Positions 8,600-57,197 of a stretch of 64,000 nucleotides of DNA are shown piece after piece. Each line of letters begins with the position of its first letter. Position 1 is the first letter of the stretch. Location: contig OZ176054.1 in assembly GCA_964247055.1 (NCBI GenBank), positions 2,728,001 through 2,792,000 on the forward strand, in the 5' to 3' direction. The notes below the pieces were generated by a model. That model made no database searches, had not been told where the DNA came from, and saw only the letters and a list, made by a program, of their open reading frames with translations. Position numbers and translations under genes: made by a program. The stretch comes from Paragordius varius. Its lineage: Eukaryota > Animalia > Nematomorpha.

Positions 8600-10003
8600 T
8601 TATAACACACAAATGACAAAAACAATTCGAATTTATGTTCTATTTTTGAAATATAGAACAAAAAATTATAATAACTAAACACAATCCCAATAATATCTTC
8701 CTCCCAAAAAAGATTAGCGCACAGCCGAGATGTGTTTTGGGATACGCTCGACCATTGAAGACAATGTGGGGCCATGTTTGGTGGCCAACTACGCCTTTTC
8801 GCCAACCTCTATTCTTTTCATTTTCAAGCCATGCAGTTGCTTTGGATGATAAAAGTAGCAAGCCACCTCTGTAGGATTTCCAGCTGTTTTTTTAACCCGA
8901 TATTTGTTTATTGTCCGATCGTCATATTCACTAATTCATTAGATTGAGGGTTGAAGGCGTATGTAAAAATATGCTTAATATTTAGTTTTAAACAATATTT
9001 TTAAATTTTGACGAAGGAAGTTGGGATCCGTTATCAGATACTCTAAAGAAATGGGTCCAAACCGAACAAAATAATGTTTAAACCATTTATAACAGTTGAA
9101 GATGTAACCTTTTAAGAAATACAACTTCACACCATTGTGAAAACCCATTAACTAAGACTAGAAAGTCTTATCTTCCGTCCATTGGACCTGTTATATCGAT
9201 ATAAATACGCTCCCAGGGAGAATTGATTTCTTGCCAATTACCGCAAACTTTCTTACTGTCACTATTCATACGGCAAGCTACAAAGTATTTGATTTCTCTA
9301 TAATGTCAGAATTTATTGAATTTAACAAGACTAAATTTCTGGTTAGAGATTTCATACTTTCGATTCCCGGGTACCTCTTATGGAAATTACTTTAAACATT
9401 TTTCTGTAATCTTTTAGGGATTATTATTTTCCCATCACGTGGCATTATCCGTTTTCAATTTCAAACTTATTGGGATCTAAATCAAAATATTGAGGAAAAT
9501 GGCCGCTCTTATAAGCATAGAATTTGAGGAATTGCAAAAAGTCTGTTCTCGTCAGTGGCGTAGCTAGAGGGGGGGAAGGGAGGCTGATGCAGGCGGCATA
9601 ATTGAATGGGCGCCGGATTTTGAAATTTTTTAATTTTATTTAAGAAAATAGGCATTTAAAAGTTATTATTTTAAATAATACATAAAAAATACCCCTTTTA
9701 TCAGTGATATCGACCACGGGTTGAATTCGATTATTCCAAGGGGTTGCATAGAGGGGAGGGGGCGCCATCACGGATTCATGCGCGGGCGCCAGAAATGCAA
9801 GCTACGCCTCTGGTTCTCGTGTTCATCTCGAATCTCGACAAATTCAGATTATTAACCCTCGAATCGATATTTCGACTATTCAGCATCAGGCTTTTGATTA
9901 CCAATATTAACTTCTTCACAAATCGGTATCCTAGATAAGGAATCTATGATAAATTTTGGGTACCCGATCGATATTATATTTTAAAATCACAATCAAACAG
10001 GGC
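8600..10003 (-). mobile_element. Degenerate Ty3/Gypsy LTR retrotransposon copy A, 3' part (RT-integrase connection, integrase, PPT, eroded 3' LTR)
   Basis: Minus-strand translation with stops and frameshifts: DFKI*YR..DSLSRIP, IIIPKRLQ..H..PGI, PWERIYIDITGP, VSDNGSQ, PQSN. Purine tract GGGAGGAAGA near 8700. Colinear with copy B. Confidence 0.75.
9553..9812. mobile_element. hAT-family MITE (260 bp) inserted in Gypsy copy A
   Basis: TIR CAGTGGCGTAGCT / AGCTACGCCTCTG (12 of 13 match). Perfect 8-bp TSD GTTCTCGT at 9545-9552 and 9813-9820. Confidence 0.85.
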
Positions 10004-10070
10004 GGGCATCGCCAATCCCCACCTGCTCGCGGTGATGCCCGCAATTCCTCCTTGGGATACTAACGGGGAT
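10004..10070 (+). ncRNA. HDV-like self-cleaving ribozyme at the 5' end of the RTE LINE
   Basis: P1 GGGCATC(10004-10)/GATGCCC(10034-40); P2 ATCCCC(10015-20)/GGGGAT(10065-70); P3 ACC/GGT; L3 TGCTCGC; P1.1 GC(10025-26)/GC(10041-42); P4 ATTCC/GGGAT; J4/2 ACTAAC with the candidate catalytic C at 10060. Confidence 0.85.
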
Positions 10071-13000
10071 GGTGGTCCGAGATGACCGAACTCTTGTAAA
10101 AGAGATTCTCTAGCTTTGTGCAGCGAAAACGCACTCTCACCTCTGAGTTTGAGGTTCAGCTATAAGGGCATATAGTTTGTAAAAAAAACCTGCTAAATTA
10201 TTTAAAACCATGGAAATATTGAACAATTATAAGAATGAATGATATCACTATGAAACGACCTAAAAACATCACAGATATATTAAAATCTATGTTAATGAAA
10301 ATTTTTAATAACAATATTATTATTTCTACTAATAAAAATTATAATAATATATATACAAATTAAAAATGGGACCATCCAACAAACAACACCAAAGTTAAAC
10401 CAAAATATAGAAACTATAATAAGATAAATATAAATAATTCCATCCCTAAGCGTCTCAAAATTGGCACTTGGAATGTTGGTACTATGAACGAAAAACTATG
10501 GATGGTTTTAGACACAATCGCAAAATTTGGCGTAGATATATGCTGCCTCCAAGAAACAAGATATAAAACATCAGGTCTAAAAAATTTAAAAGGCTTTACA
10601 TTATTTTTTACCGAGGTAAAACAATCTCAAGCTGGAGTTGCAATAATAATATAAAATGAGCACAGAGATAACATTCTTCAAATTACTAGACACAGCGACA
10701 GAATTATACAAATCAGATTGTTAATACAAAATTCAATATACAATATAATCTCATTGTACGCGCCTCAACGTGGCCTTCCCGACGTATTAAAGAGGCTTTC
10801 TGGATCCAATTGCAAAACATCTCATTCAAAATTCCTACATCCGACAAAATCATTATAGCTGGCGATTTCAACGCCCATATTGGCAGCAACGAAGGATTCA
10901 AAGGATTGCATGGTGGTTATAGCTTTGGCTTAAGAGATAAAGAAGGAGAAACTCTGCTCGAATTTTGCTCATCTATACAACTCCATATTGCTAATACCCT
11001 TTTCACCAAAAAGGACAGCAAACTGATTACCTATACATCCGGCTCACAAAAATCAACAATCGATTATATATTAACAGGTGAAAACCTGAGGCATCTGATT
11101 CAAAATACAACTACATATAATGCGGATACACAACACAAATTACTTGTAAGTACATTAAAATTAAAAAAATTCAAACCTACACCACAACCATTCCAACCCA
11201 AAATAAATACCTCCAAAATAAAACACATAAAAATAAATAATAATTTTGTTAGTAGTACAACAAACGAAATAAAAATGGATTTTTAATCAGTAGAGGAAGG
11301 ATGGAAAAACTACAAACAAACGATAATGAATAATGCTGAAAAATGGTGTGGAAGGATGGTGGTGGGATGACAGTGTGAACCCTTACTCCTGAGAAAAAAC
11401 GAGCTGCATAAAAAATGGAAGAAATCAAAAAATAATAAAGATTAAATCATATATAATCAATATAAAAAACTGGTATACAAAGCTATTATGGATTTAAAAA
11501 ATAAACGTAGTATGGAAATGGCGGACGAGCTGGAAAAGGACATAAATAATATGACTTTAGAAAAATCAAAACCAAAAGGATATTAAAAATATGTGTTGCG
11601 TTAAAGATGAAAAACATAATATTCTTATCAATCCAAACGACATAATAAACAGATGGGAAAAATTTATGAAAACTAAATTTAACCCCCCTGAATCTAAGTT
11701 TACTACACATGAAAATCCTGTCATACAAGGTCCCATTCAGGAATTCACTCCAGAAGAAATAGCAATAGTAATGAAAAACATTAAATCTAACAAAGCCACT
11801 GGGCCCTCTGAGATCTCTGCAGATTTAATGAAGGCCACACCGATAACTGTTAAATTTTTGGCAGAGCTGTTTAATTTGGTATACAAAAACAACACAATAC
11901 CAACCGATTGGGACAAAAGCTACATTTACCCCGTTTATAAAAATAAAGGAGATACCGTTGATTGCTCCAATTATCGCCCACTAAAACTTTTGGAACACGG
12001 TATGAAAGTCTTTGAAACAGTGATCAAAAATAGAATTAAAAATATAACAATAAATAAAAATCAATTTGCTTTTCAAGAAGGTAAAAGCACATCGGAACCC
12101 ATTTTTATTTTAAATCGCCTACAAGAAAAATACCTAGCAAAAGGTCAAAAGCTGTTCCACATCTTTATAGATCTGGAAAGAGCGTTTGACACTATACCCA
12201 GACACCTCATAATTGAGGCATTAAGGTATCAAAAAATCGAAGAATATTTAATAAAATTAATAATGCTCCTGTATGAACATGCAAGCTGCGTTAAAACACC
12301 AGTCGGAAACACAAATTATTTTAATATTAATATAGGCCTCCATCAGGGCTCAACTCTAAGCCCATTACTGTTTATAATAATAATGGATTTATAAGCAGAG
12401 ACTTTGCAGCTGTTCCACCATGGAACATGCTGTACGCCGACGATTTGGTTATAACAGCAAAAACAGCACATGAACTGAAAATTTTATACCTCAAATGGAA
12501 TACCTGTTTAAAAAACATGGGCTAAAAATAAACATAGAAAAGACGAAGGTAATGATCACAGGAGATGAAAAAGAACCGTAAAATACCCTTGCTCCATTTG
12601 TTACAAAGATGTTAAAACAAATTCTATTCTATGTACATCGTGTAAAATGTGGGTCCATAAAAAATGCTCCAACTTGAAAGGAAAATTAATTGACAATAAA
12701 AATTTTGAATGCCAAAGCTGTATATCAGGGAAACCAAACATCCCTAAGTCAAGGGAGTTTAGTATCGAAGATTGTAGGTTTGAAATCGTCAACGATTTTA
12801 CCTATTTAGGTAATATCAGTAATAATAATGGGGACCCTCAAACAACCATATCACATAGAATCACTCGGCTGGGCAAAATTTAACCAACTCAAATATGTAT
12901 TGACACATAAAGACATAACCGAAAAAAATAAAATCAAAATGTATAAAGTGGGTGTCCGCCCTACCCTTACCTACTCCTGCGAAACCTGGGCAATCACAAA

Positions 13001-13332
13001 AACATTAGAATCGAGATTAAAAAGAACGGAAGACAAAATGCTAAAATATATGATGATAAATTCTACCATTGAACTAGAACCAATAACAGCTTTTATCAGA
13101 ACAAATAGACTTCGTTATTTTGGACACATAGACAGATCCAGTATAGACTCACATGCAAAGGAAATTCTTGATTTACAGATTTCTGCCCCCAACCGTAAAG
13201 GTAGGCCTAAAATAACTTGGACTCAAATCATAGAAAATTCCTGAACATACCTCGAAACGCAACAAATGATAGAGACATATATCGTAAATTAATCCATGGA
13301 TCCCAATAACTGGGCCAAACCAATAATACAAT
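10004..13332 (+). mobile_element. Full-length but frameshifted RTE-clade LINE (APE endonuclease, RT, PHD-like finger), 3329 bp
   Basis: APE motifs IGTWNV, ICCLQET, YAPQ, AGDFNAHIG, IDYIL. RT motifs KATGP, NYRPLK, FIDLERAFD, GLHQGSTLSP, LYADD. RYFGHI..KGRPKITW at the C-terminus and a CAATA-type tail. 13-bp TSD AATCAAACAGGGC at 9991-10003 and 13333-13345. Confidence 0.92.
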
Positions 13333-13650
13333 AATCAAACAGGGCCCAGGCCTATCGACGTAATCTATTATTTATGACTTTCGACAAGTCTCTTTAAAAA
13401 AAAATTACAAAGCTTTATGATCCGTATTACCTGTAAAATTTTTCCCATATAAATACTTATGAAATTTATTAACAGCAAATATTTCGGCTTCCATATCAAA
13501 AATAGAGACTTGCTCAGTTTTAGACAATGTACGTAATATATAAGCAATAGAAAATTCTTTGTCATTAGTTGATTGAAACATAACAGCCCCCATACCATAG
13601 TCGGATGCATCGGTTTTAATATAATTGGATCCTTATTATTGTATATTTGA
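13333..13650 (-). mobile_element. Gypsy copy A, RNase H portion (upstream of the LINE insertion)
   Basis: TDASDYGMGAVMFQ..IAY..RTLSKTE..AVNKFHKYLYGK.F...TDHKAL. It joins across the LINE TSD to the connection domain (RLRR*AWALFDCDF). Confidence 0.8.
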
Positions 13651-16817: not shown

Positions 16818-18914
16818 TTATTCCATAAATGATGGTTCCTCCACCAAAACATGTCTTTTGGCCAGGTTTTTATTGTTACAATTATTATTAGATGATGGCT
16901 GAGTTTTTCCTTGTAAATTTATAGTTGTGGTCTCAGTTGTTAATACAGATTGGTCATTAGAGCCTAATAAGATACTTTGCTTATCGTATAAATTTTGGTT
17001 TTTACAGTTCCCTTCGGGTTTTATATTATTGTTTGCATTATTCTGATTATACTGACGTCTTTTAAGTGATGTTAGCGCTTTTTTACAAGGCATGATACAA
17101 ACGGAGACTCCTTTAAACATTTCCTGGAAAGCAAGTCGAAAGTTTTCACTTAAGAAGGCATACAAAATGGGATTGACACATGAATTGGCATATGCAAAGC
17201 AATATATGGCTAGAGAAAGGTACATTACAGGTCTTGGTAGGGGAGAATCAACATTGCGATTTTGTCGAGCACGAAGTACAAGTTGCAAAATCCAATACGG
17301 TGTCCAACACAATATGTAAATGGCTATAATAGTTAAAACCATGTGAGTTACACGCTTTATATTTTTTCTCTTTCTTTCGGCAAATGTTGTGTTGATGGGC
17401 GGTTGCGGTTGGGAAGGCGTGGATAGAGGTTGTTCTTTTGAAGGCATTTTGACTATCTTGCATGCGTTCAGGAGTTTTGAAGAAGGCACAGTGTTGATTT
17501 TTTCAGCAGTTTTTGGAGGAGTTGGGGGACTTGGAGTTTGTAGATTTATTTGTATCATTGATGTATTATTGTTGTTGTTGGGTTCGAATTTAGACAACAT
17601 ATTTTTCCCAATATATGATGGATTTCGTTTAGTGGTTATAGATTTGTCTTTTTTTATAACATTATCGCCACCGTCGTTATTTTCTATATCGTAATCATTG
17701 TCGTAATCATCAACGCTGATGTTTACAATATTATGAATACTTTGTTTAGCAGCGAATTCCTGTGGAATGGTTAACTTTTTGCCAGTCATAAGATCCCCAT
17801 GATTGGTATTATTGTCTGAATCTATAAGGGATACGTTTTCCTGCCTTTTTATAGGTGATTTAAGTGGATTGCCTTTTGCGGGTGATAGCGAATTAGATGA
17901 GTCTAAATTTTCTTTAGTGACAAAAATGGAACTTAAGCGATCACCAATTCTATGTTGTGCTTTGACAATGGACGGTAACAGACTTTGTAAAACACCTGTA
18001 TGGCTGCTCATTTCGTCAGGCCCATCGGTGTAAGACAATTCAATGGTACTAGGGATCGGTGTTTTGAGACTTTTTTGATCCTTGTGTTTTATTTTACGCC
18101 ATTCTTTGGGACCTGTGGATCTTAGTTTCATAATGACTAGGGAATAAAAAATGACAGTTAAAAGTACTGGAATGCCATATGCAAAAACAAATGTATACAG
18201 TGTGAATATGGTAGCTAAATCGAGTCTTTTGCGTTTACCCCGTCGGAGCCAAAATCCTGATCTAACCTTATCTTCCTCCTCTGGCCATATAAGGTGACAT
18301 GTTTGAATGGTGCGATTTGAGTTTAGTGTTATCTCGACCATGTTTGCATGTTTCATGATAGGTATCATAATAAGGGCCGAAAAACACCAAATAGCCAAAC
18401 ATATTAGTTTAGCGGTTACCGGTCTGCGTCTATAGCTTCGGGCTAAGCTATTTGTCGCAAGGCACACGGCTACGAATCTATCTGCCGACAAAATCATGTA
18501 GAAAACGCTACTAACGAATTGATTAACATTGGCTGACACGTAGTAGGCTTTACACATAAACGGACCGAACAACCATTGACCTGAAACCATGGTTGTAATG
18601 ATTAAAGGTATCCCTATCAAAAAAAGTACATCAGCCGTAGCCAGATTTAAAATGTACATGTTTGTCACTGTACGCATTTTGGGGTACCGAAGGATGGCAT
18701 AAATGACACAACAATTACCGAAAAGCCCTATGAGACATACAATTATGTACACTGTCATAACAAGTACGGTTGATCGATTAAGCGAATTCCTGCTGGGTGT
18801 GGGAGCAGGCGTACTTGATTGGAGATTATCAGTTGTATCACTTACACTATTTAATACTGTTGAAACATTAACCAAAAGGGTAACAAGTTTTGAGTTTGGG
18901 GAAAGGGTTGACAT
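16818..18914 (-). CDS. Class A neuropeptide GPCR of the allatostatin-C/somatostatin receptor family, single coding exon, 698 aa
   Basis: Seven hydrophobic segments with GN..V, KMRTVTNMYILNLATAD, WLFG.FMCK, NQFVSS..LSADRF, CWTPYW and NSCVNPILYAFLSENFR. Confidence 0.88.
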   Translation of the reverse strand: MSTLSPNSKLVTLLVNVSTVLNSVSDTTDNLQSSTPAPTPSRNSLNRSTVLVMTVYIIVCLIGLFGNCCVIYAILRYPKMRTVTNMYILNLATADVLFLIGIPLIITTMVSGQWLFGPFMCKAYYVSANVNQFVSSVFYMILSADRFVAVCLATNSLARSYRRRPVTAKLICLAIWCFSALIMIPIMKHANMVEITLNSNRTIQTCHLIWPEEEDKVRSGFWLRRGKRKRLDLATIFTLYTFVFAYGIPVLLTVIFYSLVIMKLRSTGPKEWRKIKHKDQKSLKTPIPSTIELSYTDGPDEMSSHTGVLQSLLPSIVKAQHRIGDRLSSIFVTKENLDSSNSLSPAKGNPLKSPIKRQENVSLIDSDNNTNHGDLMTGKKLTIPQEFAAKQSIHNIVNISVDDYDNDYDIENNDGGDNVIKKDKSITTKRNPSYIGKNMLSKFEPNNNNNTSMIQINLQTPSPPTPPKTAEKINTVPSSKLLNACKIVKMPSKEQPLSTPSQPQPPINTTFAERKRKNIKRVTHMVLTIIAIYILCWTPYWILQLVLRARQNRNVDSPLPRPVMYLSLAIYCFAYANSCVNPILYAFLSENFRLAFQEMFKGVSVCIMPCKKALTSLKRRQYNQNNANNNIKPEGNCKNQNLYDKQSILLGSNDQSVLTTETTTINLQGKTQPSSNNNCNNKNLAKRHVLVEEPSFME

Positions 18915-56852: not shown

Positions 56853-57078
56853 GCTATAGGTAACAAGGCAACGGTTAAAAGAAATATAAAATAGTAAACA
56901 TAAACAAATATTTTTATTTATAAAGATGCAAGAACATATAAAAATTCTTGGCGTATAAAATTTCTATACTGATTATAACGGATAAAGGCGACTTCAAGCA
57001 AGTTGACCATCAAGGTAATCAAAATTAGCCGCGCTCTCTTTTGAGAATAAATTCAATTTATTTTACCTCTTATAACAT

Positions 57079-57197
57079 GTTACGACCATATCACGTTGAA
57101 AGCACCGGTTCCCTTCCGAACACCGAAGTTAAGCAACGTTGAGCCTGGTTAGTACTTGGATGGGTGACCGCCTGGGAATCCCAGGTGTCGTAACTTT
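57079..57197 (+). rRNA. 5S rRNA gene (single dispersed copy, possibly a pseudogene)
   Basis: GTTACGACCATATCACGTTGAAAGCACCGG...GAAGTTAAGC...GGTTAGTACTTGGATGGGTGACCGCCTGGGAA...GTGTCGTAAC; the ends pair (GTTACGAC/GTCGTAAC); internal A- and C-box-like elements are present. Confidence 0.92.

Follow-up and report, generated by a model that had tools for sequence, protein, structure and literature searches.

Does a LINE in the nematomorph Paragordius varius begin with a self-cleaving ribozyme, and did that ribozyme set the 5' end of the element? The question is raised by positions 10004–10072 (+) of the window, that is, the whole stretch of 64,000 nucleotides of contig OZ176054.1 (assembly GCA_964247055.1) analysed here, for which a sequence-only reading had proposed an HDV-like ribozyme whose predicted cleavage site is the start of a full-length RTE LINE. 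The cleavage site of HDV-like ribozymes lies at the first nucleotide of P1 (PMC4908430), and in RTE, R4 and L1Tc elements it lies at the 5' junction (PMC3774820; PMC6765202). Such ribozymes have been published for RTE 5' ends before, and what is new here is the family and a swapped pair in the core. We find that 10004–10072 (+) is very likely the DNA copy of such a ribozyme, with cleavage predicted directly before G10004.

The fold at the start of the element

By reading the sequence, all parts of a nested double pseudoknot of the HDV type can be placed without mismatch from G10004 on (Table 1), and the earlier assignments of P1, P2, P3, L3, P1.1, P4 and J4/2 all stand. P2 has a core of 6 bp (10015–10020 with 10065–10070) and continues past the bulged A10014 with the pairs C10013–G10071 and C10012–G10072. 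The letters expected of an HDV core are present in L3 (TGCTCGC), in J4/2 (CTAA) and at the cut site (G10004–C10040). The L3 sequence agrees with the U19/C23/G24 core of the published HDV-like descriptor (PMC6326823), and the J4/2 of the antigenomic HDV ribozyme is C76 U77 A78 A79 (PMC2175327).

Table 1. Features of the predicted ribozyme and its host element in the window, and the ribozyme lineages of the genome
Feature	Window position	Strand	Description
Target-site duplication, left copy AATCAAACAGGGC	9991–10003	+	exact repeat at 13333–13345
Predicted cut	between C10003 and G10004	+	G10004 is the first base of P1
HDV-like ribozyme (predicted), whole fold	10004–10072	+	sequence read, drz-Agam-1, descriptor, model R1
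P1 5' strand GGGCATC	10004–10010	+	pairs with 10034–10040; 7/7 Watson–Crick
P2 5' strand CC, bulged A10014, ATCCCC	10012–10020	+	pairs with 10065–10072
P3, 3 bp	10021–10023 with 10031–10033	+	encloses the 7-nt L3
L3 TGCTCGC	10024–10030	+	U1, C5 and G6 retained
P1 3' strand GATGCCC	10034–10040	+	G10004–C10040 at the cut site
P1.1 3' partners G10041 and C10042	10041–10042	+	pair with C10026 and G10025
P4 hairpin, 5 bp including one U–G, loop TCCTT	10044–10058	+	10044–10048 with 10054–10058
J4/2 CTAA	10060–10063	+	C10060 is the predicted catalytic cytosine; AA are the ribose-zipper adenines
P2 3' strand GGGGATGG	10065–10072	+	pairs with 10012–10020
5' UTR	10073–10209	+	contains block 10101–10185, ~80% conserved with two sister families
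Decayed single ORF	10210–13300	+	ATG at 10210; frames 1, 3, 1, 2, 1; many stops
AP endonuclease	~10463–11128	+	Pfam Exo_endo_phos_2 on fragments
Reverse transcriptase	~11945–12640	+	Pfam RVT_1 on fragments
A/T-rich 3' tail AATAATACAAT, no poly(A)	13320–13332	+	sequence read
Target-site duplication, right copy	13333–13345	+	exact repeat
F1 (window family)			P1 5' strand GGGCATC; 7 matches in alignment A2
F2			P1 5' strand GGACATC; 12 matches in alignment A2
F3			P1 5' strand GGGATGC; 15 matches in alignment A2; no P4
F4			P1 5' strand GGGGTGC; 25 matches in alignment A2; G1–U pair, no P4
F4b			P1 5' strand GGGGTGT; 4 matches in alignment A2
F5			P1 5' strand GGCCAAC; 20 matches in alignment A2
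F6			P1 5' strand GACCAAC; 2 matches in alignment A2
F7			P1 5' strand GATGGCC; 5 matches in alignment A2 (more in the genome search)

The best Rfam match is drz-Agam-1 (RF01787), which scores 30.3 bits (E 2e-4) in a permissive search of 301 nt (9900–10200) and stays below its gathering cut-off of 37. When the whole window is searched at gathering thresholds, the ribozyme is not reported and the sole match is a 5S rRNA gene (57078–57196 (+), 118 bits). The window also holds an uninterrupted ORF of 698 aa at 16818–18914 (−) for a rhodopsin-family 7TM receptor (7tm_1, 159 bits).

A descriptor that asks for P1 7/7, P2 5/5, P3 3/3, L3 U...CG., a Watson–Crick P1.1 and J4/2 C-N-R-A has a single match on the two strands of the window, at 10004–10069 (+). 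The same descriptor has no match in 200 simulated 64-kb sequences with the dinucleotide make-up of the window, and none in 100 random 64-kb sequences at 62% GC. Covariance model R1, described below, gives the window ribozyme 82.7 bits. Pseudoknot-free minimum free energy folding, a method uninformative on pseudoknots, returns a long hairpin based on P1 (z about −2.5) and does not recover the ribozyme. So modest a z-score would suit a resemblance that a GC-rich patch had produced by chance, but such a resemblance is excluded, being refuted for practical purposes by the 300 random controls without a match and by the covariation among at least 103 related matches in the genome. The start of the fold also coincides exactly with the boundary of a target-site duplication.

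The host element and its relatives

The 13-mer AATCAAACAGGGC that ends at 10003 recurs exactly at 13333–13345, where 0.07 chance matches are expected, and the two copies bracket an APE+RT element of 3,329 bp without poly(A). Because the left duplication ends at 10003, the insert starts at G10004, base 1 of P1, just as had been read from the sequence.

The hallmarks of RTE elements listed in PMC2887409 are their size with a single APE+RT ORF, a tail of simple sequence repeats (SSR) and short duplications. For an expected 3.2–3.6 kb with an APE+RT ORF of ~1,000 aa, the window insert has 3,329 bp, and sister copies measure 3.39–3.65 kb with intact ORFs of 1014–1069 aa that carry Exo_endo_phos and RVT_1. 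A very short 3' UTR and dispersed insertion sites are expected too: tails consist of AATAATACAAT, (GATG)n or (GAT)n without poly(A), and insertions at unrelated sites are flanked by duplications of 12–16 bp. Architecture, size, SSR tail and duplications support the assignment of the element as RTE-like. When an intact sister ORF of 1,069 aa is compared with the window by tblastn, residues 66–1062 align at 40–50% identity. The window copy is full-length in extent but coding-dead, because its reading runs through frames 1, 3, 1, 2, 1 with many stops. Hence the earlier label of a full-length RTE LINE is right for the extent, bounded by the duplication, and wrong for the coding sequence, which is broken by frameshifts and stops. 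The copy is an old insertion.

The nearest database proteins are unnamed APE+RT proteins of ~1,000 aa encoded on 3.2–3.7-kb contigs, at no more than 36% identity, together with grass proteins. Six metagenome contigs with the nearest protein relatives (L041, L042 and L133–L136) gave no HDV-like match with model R1, filters on or off, or with Rfam. These contigs are neutral evidence: their 5' ends may be missing, or the elements may use another device. At the 3' end of one of them (L133:3287–3429) there are spurious microRNA matches, to mir-297 and others, below the cut-offs, which probably reflect an RTE-type simple-sequence tail. After the reverse transcriptase, intact sister ORFs show a weak PHD-finger-like match (21 bits, cut-off 24; L033:646–3852 (−), residues 818–861, and L037:1210–4329, residues 778–821), and a finger of this kind is present in several of the nearest database relatives too.

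A search of the genome with the first 297 nt of the element returned further copies of the window family (F1) and two sister families, which were reached through the 5' UTR block 10101–10185 and have ribozymes of their own with different helices. Model R1, built from 13 sequences with a structure of P1 and P3 only, then yielded at least 103 ribozyme matches in the genome at E ≤ 0.01. As this count rests on 150 of ~10,000 first-look candidates scored, the true number is probably higher. The matches (loci L043–L132) form about eight lineages told apart by the sequence of P1, and nearly all of them lie at the very start of an RTE-like element. F2 and F5 exceed the drz-Agam-1 cut-off at 39.8 and 38.9 bits, and the one F4 copy that was run against Rfam (L068) was not reported. 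The suggestion that family and variant are uncatalogued thus holds for F1, which lies below the Rfam cut-off, but not for the class, which is catalogued and includes the two sister families that pass. P4 is built from unrelated hairpins in five lineages and is absent in two (F3 and F4); it is likewise variable or absent in R2 ribozymes (PMC3774820).

In the 13 sequences from three families, the paired cells amount to 92.6%, compared with 38–52% when the partners are slid, and double changes occur in 9 of 19 pairs. With 68 distinct sequences from about eight lineages the figures are 92.0% and 37–51%, and compensatory double changes are found in 12 of 20 pairs, P2 and P1.1 included. Between lineages, 5 of the 7 pairs of P1 covary. 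P2 is paired in 94.3% of cells, with double changes in 6 of 8 pairs, and P1.1 is paired in 93.1% of cells (68 distinct sequences). Pairing in P2 and P1.1 is unbiased by the search model, because neither helix was in R1. A genome search for further copies and for covariation had been proposed as a check on the sequence-only reading, and both were found, in at least 103 matches and 12 compensated pairs. Covariation over about eight lineages supports the fold as a genuine HDV-like ribozyme shape.

Other conserved features accompany the ribozymes. F1, F2 and F3 share ~80% identity over a 5' UTR block of ~85 nt and the ACCATG start context (10101–10212), and they have the block at 10101–10185 in common although their ribozyme helices differ. 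RNAalifold places three small hairpins in this block with 4 of 15 pairs compensated, weak support for a structure. F3, F4 and F4b have a different, longer conserved 5' UTR block (L057:1563–1800, L068:1563–1760 and L104:265–420), which is G/C-rich, contains long-range complementary runs (TGTGTG...CACACA) and is possibly a structured RNA. At five loci (L069, L084, L104, L109 and L120) a fragment of the ribozyme, part of J1/2-P2-P3, lies in the 30 nt directly upstream of a complete one; these are partial duplications at the 5' junction, perhaps from template switching. A second, weaker HDV-like shape is seen 11 nt past the F7 ribozyme (L117:292–362, 24 bits). Its L3 is TGAAAAA, without the core C-G, so that it may have arisen as a tandem duplicate that is now dead, or be some other structure.

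Uniform 5' ends and the proposed processing

In F2 and F3, all 7 of the 7 further full-length copies have duplications of 12–16 bp that end one base before G1, and these elements terminate in (GATG)n or (GAT)n repeats. In F2–F5, most complete copies have upstream flanks that turn unrelated exactly at G1, and some copies are without the first 2–10 nt, a 5' variation that matches the pattern reported for cleavage at position 0 (PMC3774820). None of the copies examined has an insert that starts upstream of P1. Together with the duplication in the window, these copies and flanks bear out the proposal that the predicted cut is the 5' end of the element. Two candidates for element sequence upstream of the ribozyme were rejected: the constant sequence before F7 is the 28S rRNA target, and the T that precedes G1 in 4 of 5 family-2 copies is assigned to the target by the duplications. 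F7 lies directly 3' of 28S rRNA (Rfam LSU, 225.8 bits, model positions 2628–2824), for example at L117:1–362 (G000:C2:2270731–2271092) and likewise at L115, L116, L118 and L122.

From these ends we infer both the cleavage itself and its role in setting the 5' end. The predicted ribozyme makes up the opening 69 nt of an RTE-like, promoter-poor LINE of 3.3 kb, and the master element would be transcribed within a longer read-through RNA. Once folded, the ribozyme would break the phosphodiester bond just before G1 of P1, C10060 acting as the catalytic base. Cleavage by HDV-type ribozymes falls at their 5' edge, so the LINE RNA would keep the complete ribozyme and carry a 5'-OH end. The freed RNA would be reverse-transcribed in full at the nicked target, and the new copy would begin at G10004, right after the duplication, because the ribozyme-ended RNA had been its template. 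The founder RNA of the window copy would thus have been released from a read-through transcript by its ribozyme and have kept that ribozyme at its 5' end.

A fixed start site of transcription also predicts uniform 5' ends. The common G1 could therefore be the start site of an internal promoter, and the fold a structured but non-cleaving element of the 5' UTR, acting in translation or protein binding, for example. The additional conserved 5' UTR block downstream (10101–10185) would suit such an arrangement, and in L1Tc a single stretch of 77 nt serves both as internal promoter and as ribozyme (PMC3383444). However, what is conserved corresponds exactly to the catalytic core of HDV (L3 U..CG., P1.1 and J4/2 C-N-A-A), a core carried by P1 and P2 helices that covary over about eight lineages. 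Two sister ribozymes pass a curated Rfam ribozyme model, and F7 directly adjoins the 3' side of 28S rRNA, a place at which the co-transcript made by RNA polymerase I must be cut. A promoter-set end with a non-cleaving fold is improbable against this evidence, and we prefer ribozyme cleavage as the origin of the common end.

The window copy carries a competing fold. When it is folded with its native upstream flank, the most stable pseudoknot-free structure is a 12-bp hairpin, which extends P1 outward through G10002–C10042 and C10003–G10041, occupying the partners of P1.1, and inward by pairing GCC at 10011–13 with GGU at 10031–33, occupying a strand of P3. Extension of P1 by upstream bases reportedly lowers cleavage in R2 and L1Tc ribozymes (PMC3185411). 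A construct that starts near 9980 may therefore under-report the activity, because its upstream bases extend P1.

The swapped P1.1 pair and its place among known ribozymes

The published descriptor fixes P1.1 as two C–G pairs, C20–G37 and C21–G36 (PMC6326823), and the window ribozyme departs from it. The pair next to P1, C10026–G10041, is canonical, whereas the outer pair, G10025–C10042, is swapped and still Watson–Crick. The corresponding column pair 30/53 is C–G in 50 distinct sequences and G–C in 5, all five of them from family 1; in alignment A1 the counts are 7 CG and 4 GC. Among family-1 5' ends, GC follows P1 in 7 of 7 and L3 has G at position 2 in 5 of 7, so the swap is ancestral to the family and compensated. 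The view of P1.1 as a compensated variant is thereby confirmed, with G–C confined to family 1.

Family 1 itself is old and mostly 5'-truncated. Its 3' ends are found in at least 40 copies at 84–94% identity to the window copy, and its 5' ends in about eight. Copies L049 and L051 start with GGGCATC, and L052 starts with AGGCATC and has the matching GATGCCT on its 3' strand. No intact ORF was found in four copies that were followed along their length, namely the window copy and the loci at three other 5' ends. The family looks extinct, whereas sister families in this genome are still intact.

This decay, with the score below the Rfam cut-off and the competing hairpin of the window copy, is what would be seen if the family-1 ribozyme were a crippled relic, inactivated by the P1.1 swap or by later mutations, with neither the copy nor its founder processed by a ribozyme. 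However, the swap is shared by the family-1 5' ends and hence predates insertions that begin at G1, and the window copy keeps all of its helices fully paired. We give little credence to an inactive relic. An active family-1 ribozyme remains our reading, and the activity of the swapped P1.1 is assumed from its Watson–Crick compensation and its spread through the family.

The closest published systems are the HDV-like ribozymes of mosquito of the drz-Agam-1 and drz-Agam-2 type, together with the RTE-associated ribozymes of Ruminski et al. 2011 (J Biol Chem 286:41286; cited in PMC3774820 and PMC6765202). They share with the window ribozyme the nested double pseudoknot, a common ACC-L3-GGU core, a CUAA J4/2 and a location at the 5' end of an RTE-type element that is cut at the 5' junction. 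Unlike drz-Agam, the window family scores below the cut-off, has a G–C and a C–G pair in P1.1 instead of two C–G pairs and has a short P4, and its host belongs to a different phylum. In R2 and R4/Dong elements (Eickbush & Eickbush 2010; PMC3774820), a 5' ribozyme likewise separates the LINE RNA from co-transcribed sequence, P4 varies or is missing, few core positions are invariant, and cleavage at position 0 leaves 5' junctions that differ by a few bases. However, R2 is rDNA-specific, uses a restriction-like endonuclease and in the majority of species cleaves upstream in the 28S sequence, whereas the window element is dispersed, has an AP endonuclease and makes duplications of 12–16 bp.

L1Tc of Trypanosoma cruzi (PMC3185411) has an HDV-like fold in its first ~77 nt with cleavage at +1, which is sensitive to upstream bases when these lengthen P1 and displace P1.1; it differs from the window ribozyme in a single-pair P1.1, in doubling as an internal promoter and in belonging to another LINE clade. 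The antigenomic HDV ribozyme has an identical CUAA J4/2, the same U...CG frame in L3 and a P1 of 7 bp, but it is viral, serves rolling-circle processing and has a canonical P1.1 and a different P4 and P2. The twister-variant ribozymes of Schistosoma RTE-type and other non-LTR elements (PMC8501958; PMC7761336) do the same job of 5' processing with a fold unrelated to the HDV-like one. Among the papers searched, none links Nematomorpha with ribozymes.

The G–C/C–G P1.1 may be a selected variant of the HDV core, competent in vivo and outside the descriptor used for cataloguing, that is found in Nematomorpha; we lean slightly towards this view. If it is true, searches with descriptors that fix P1.1 as C–G/C–G under-count the HDV-like class, and the about eight lineages with at least 103 copies, some with intact ORFs, form a natural mutational series for the fold.

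The known picture of RTE-type 5'-end formation is unchanged by this locus. With it, the HDV-like ribozymes of LINE RNA processing gain a family that is well supported and absent from catalogues, and in which a compensatory swap has occurred naturally in the two base pairs of P1.1, the pseudoknot whose formation is said to set off active-site folding. Family 1 escapes Rfam, and so do the lineages without P4, going by the one F4 copy run. Family 1 and its sister lineages provide a covariation set for better ribozyme models and help the annotation of LINE 5' ends in an AT-rich animal genome.
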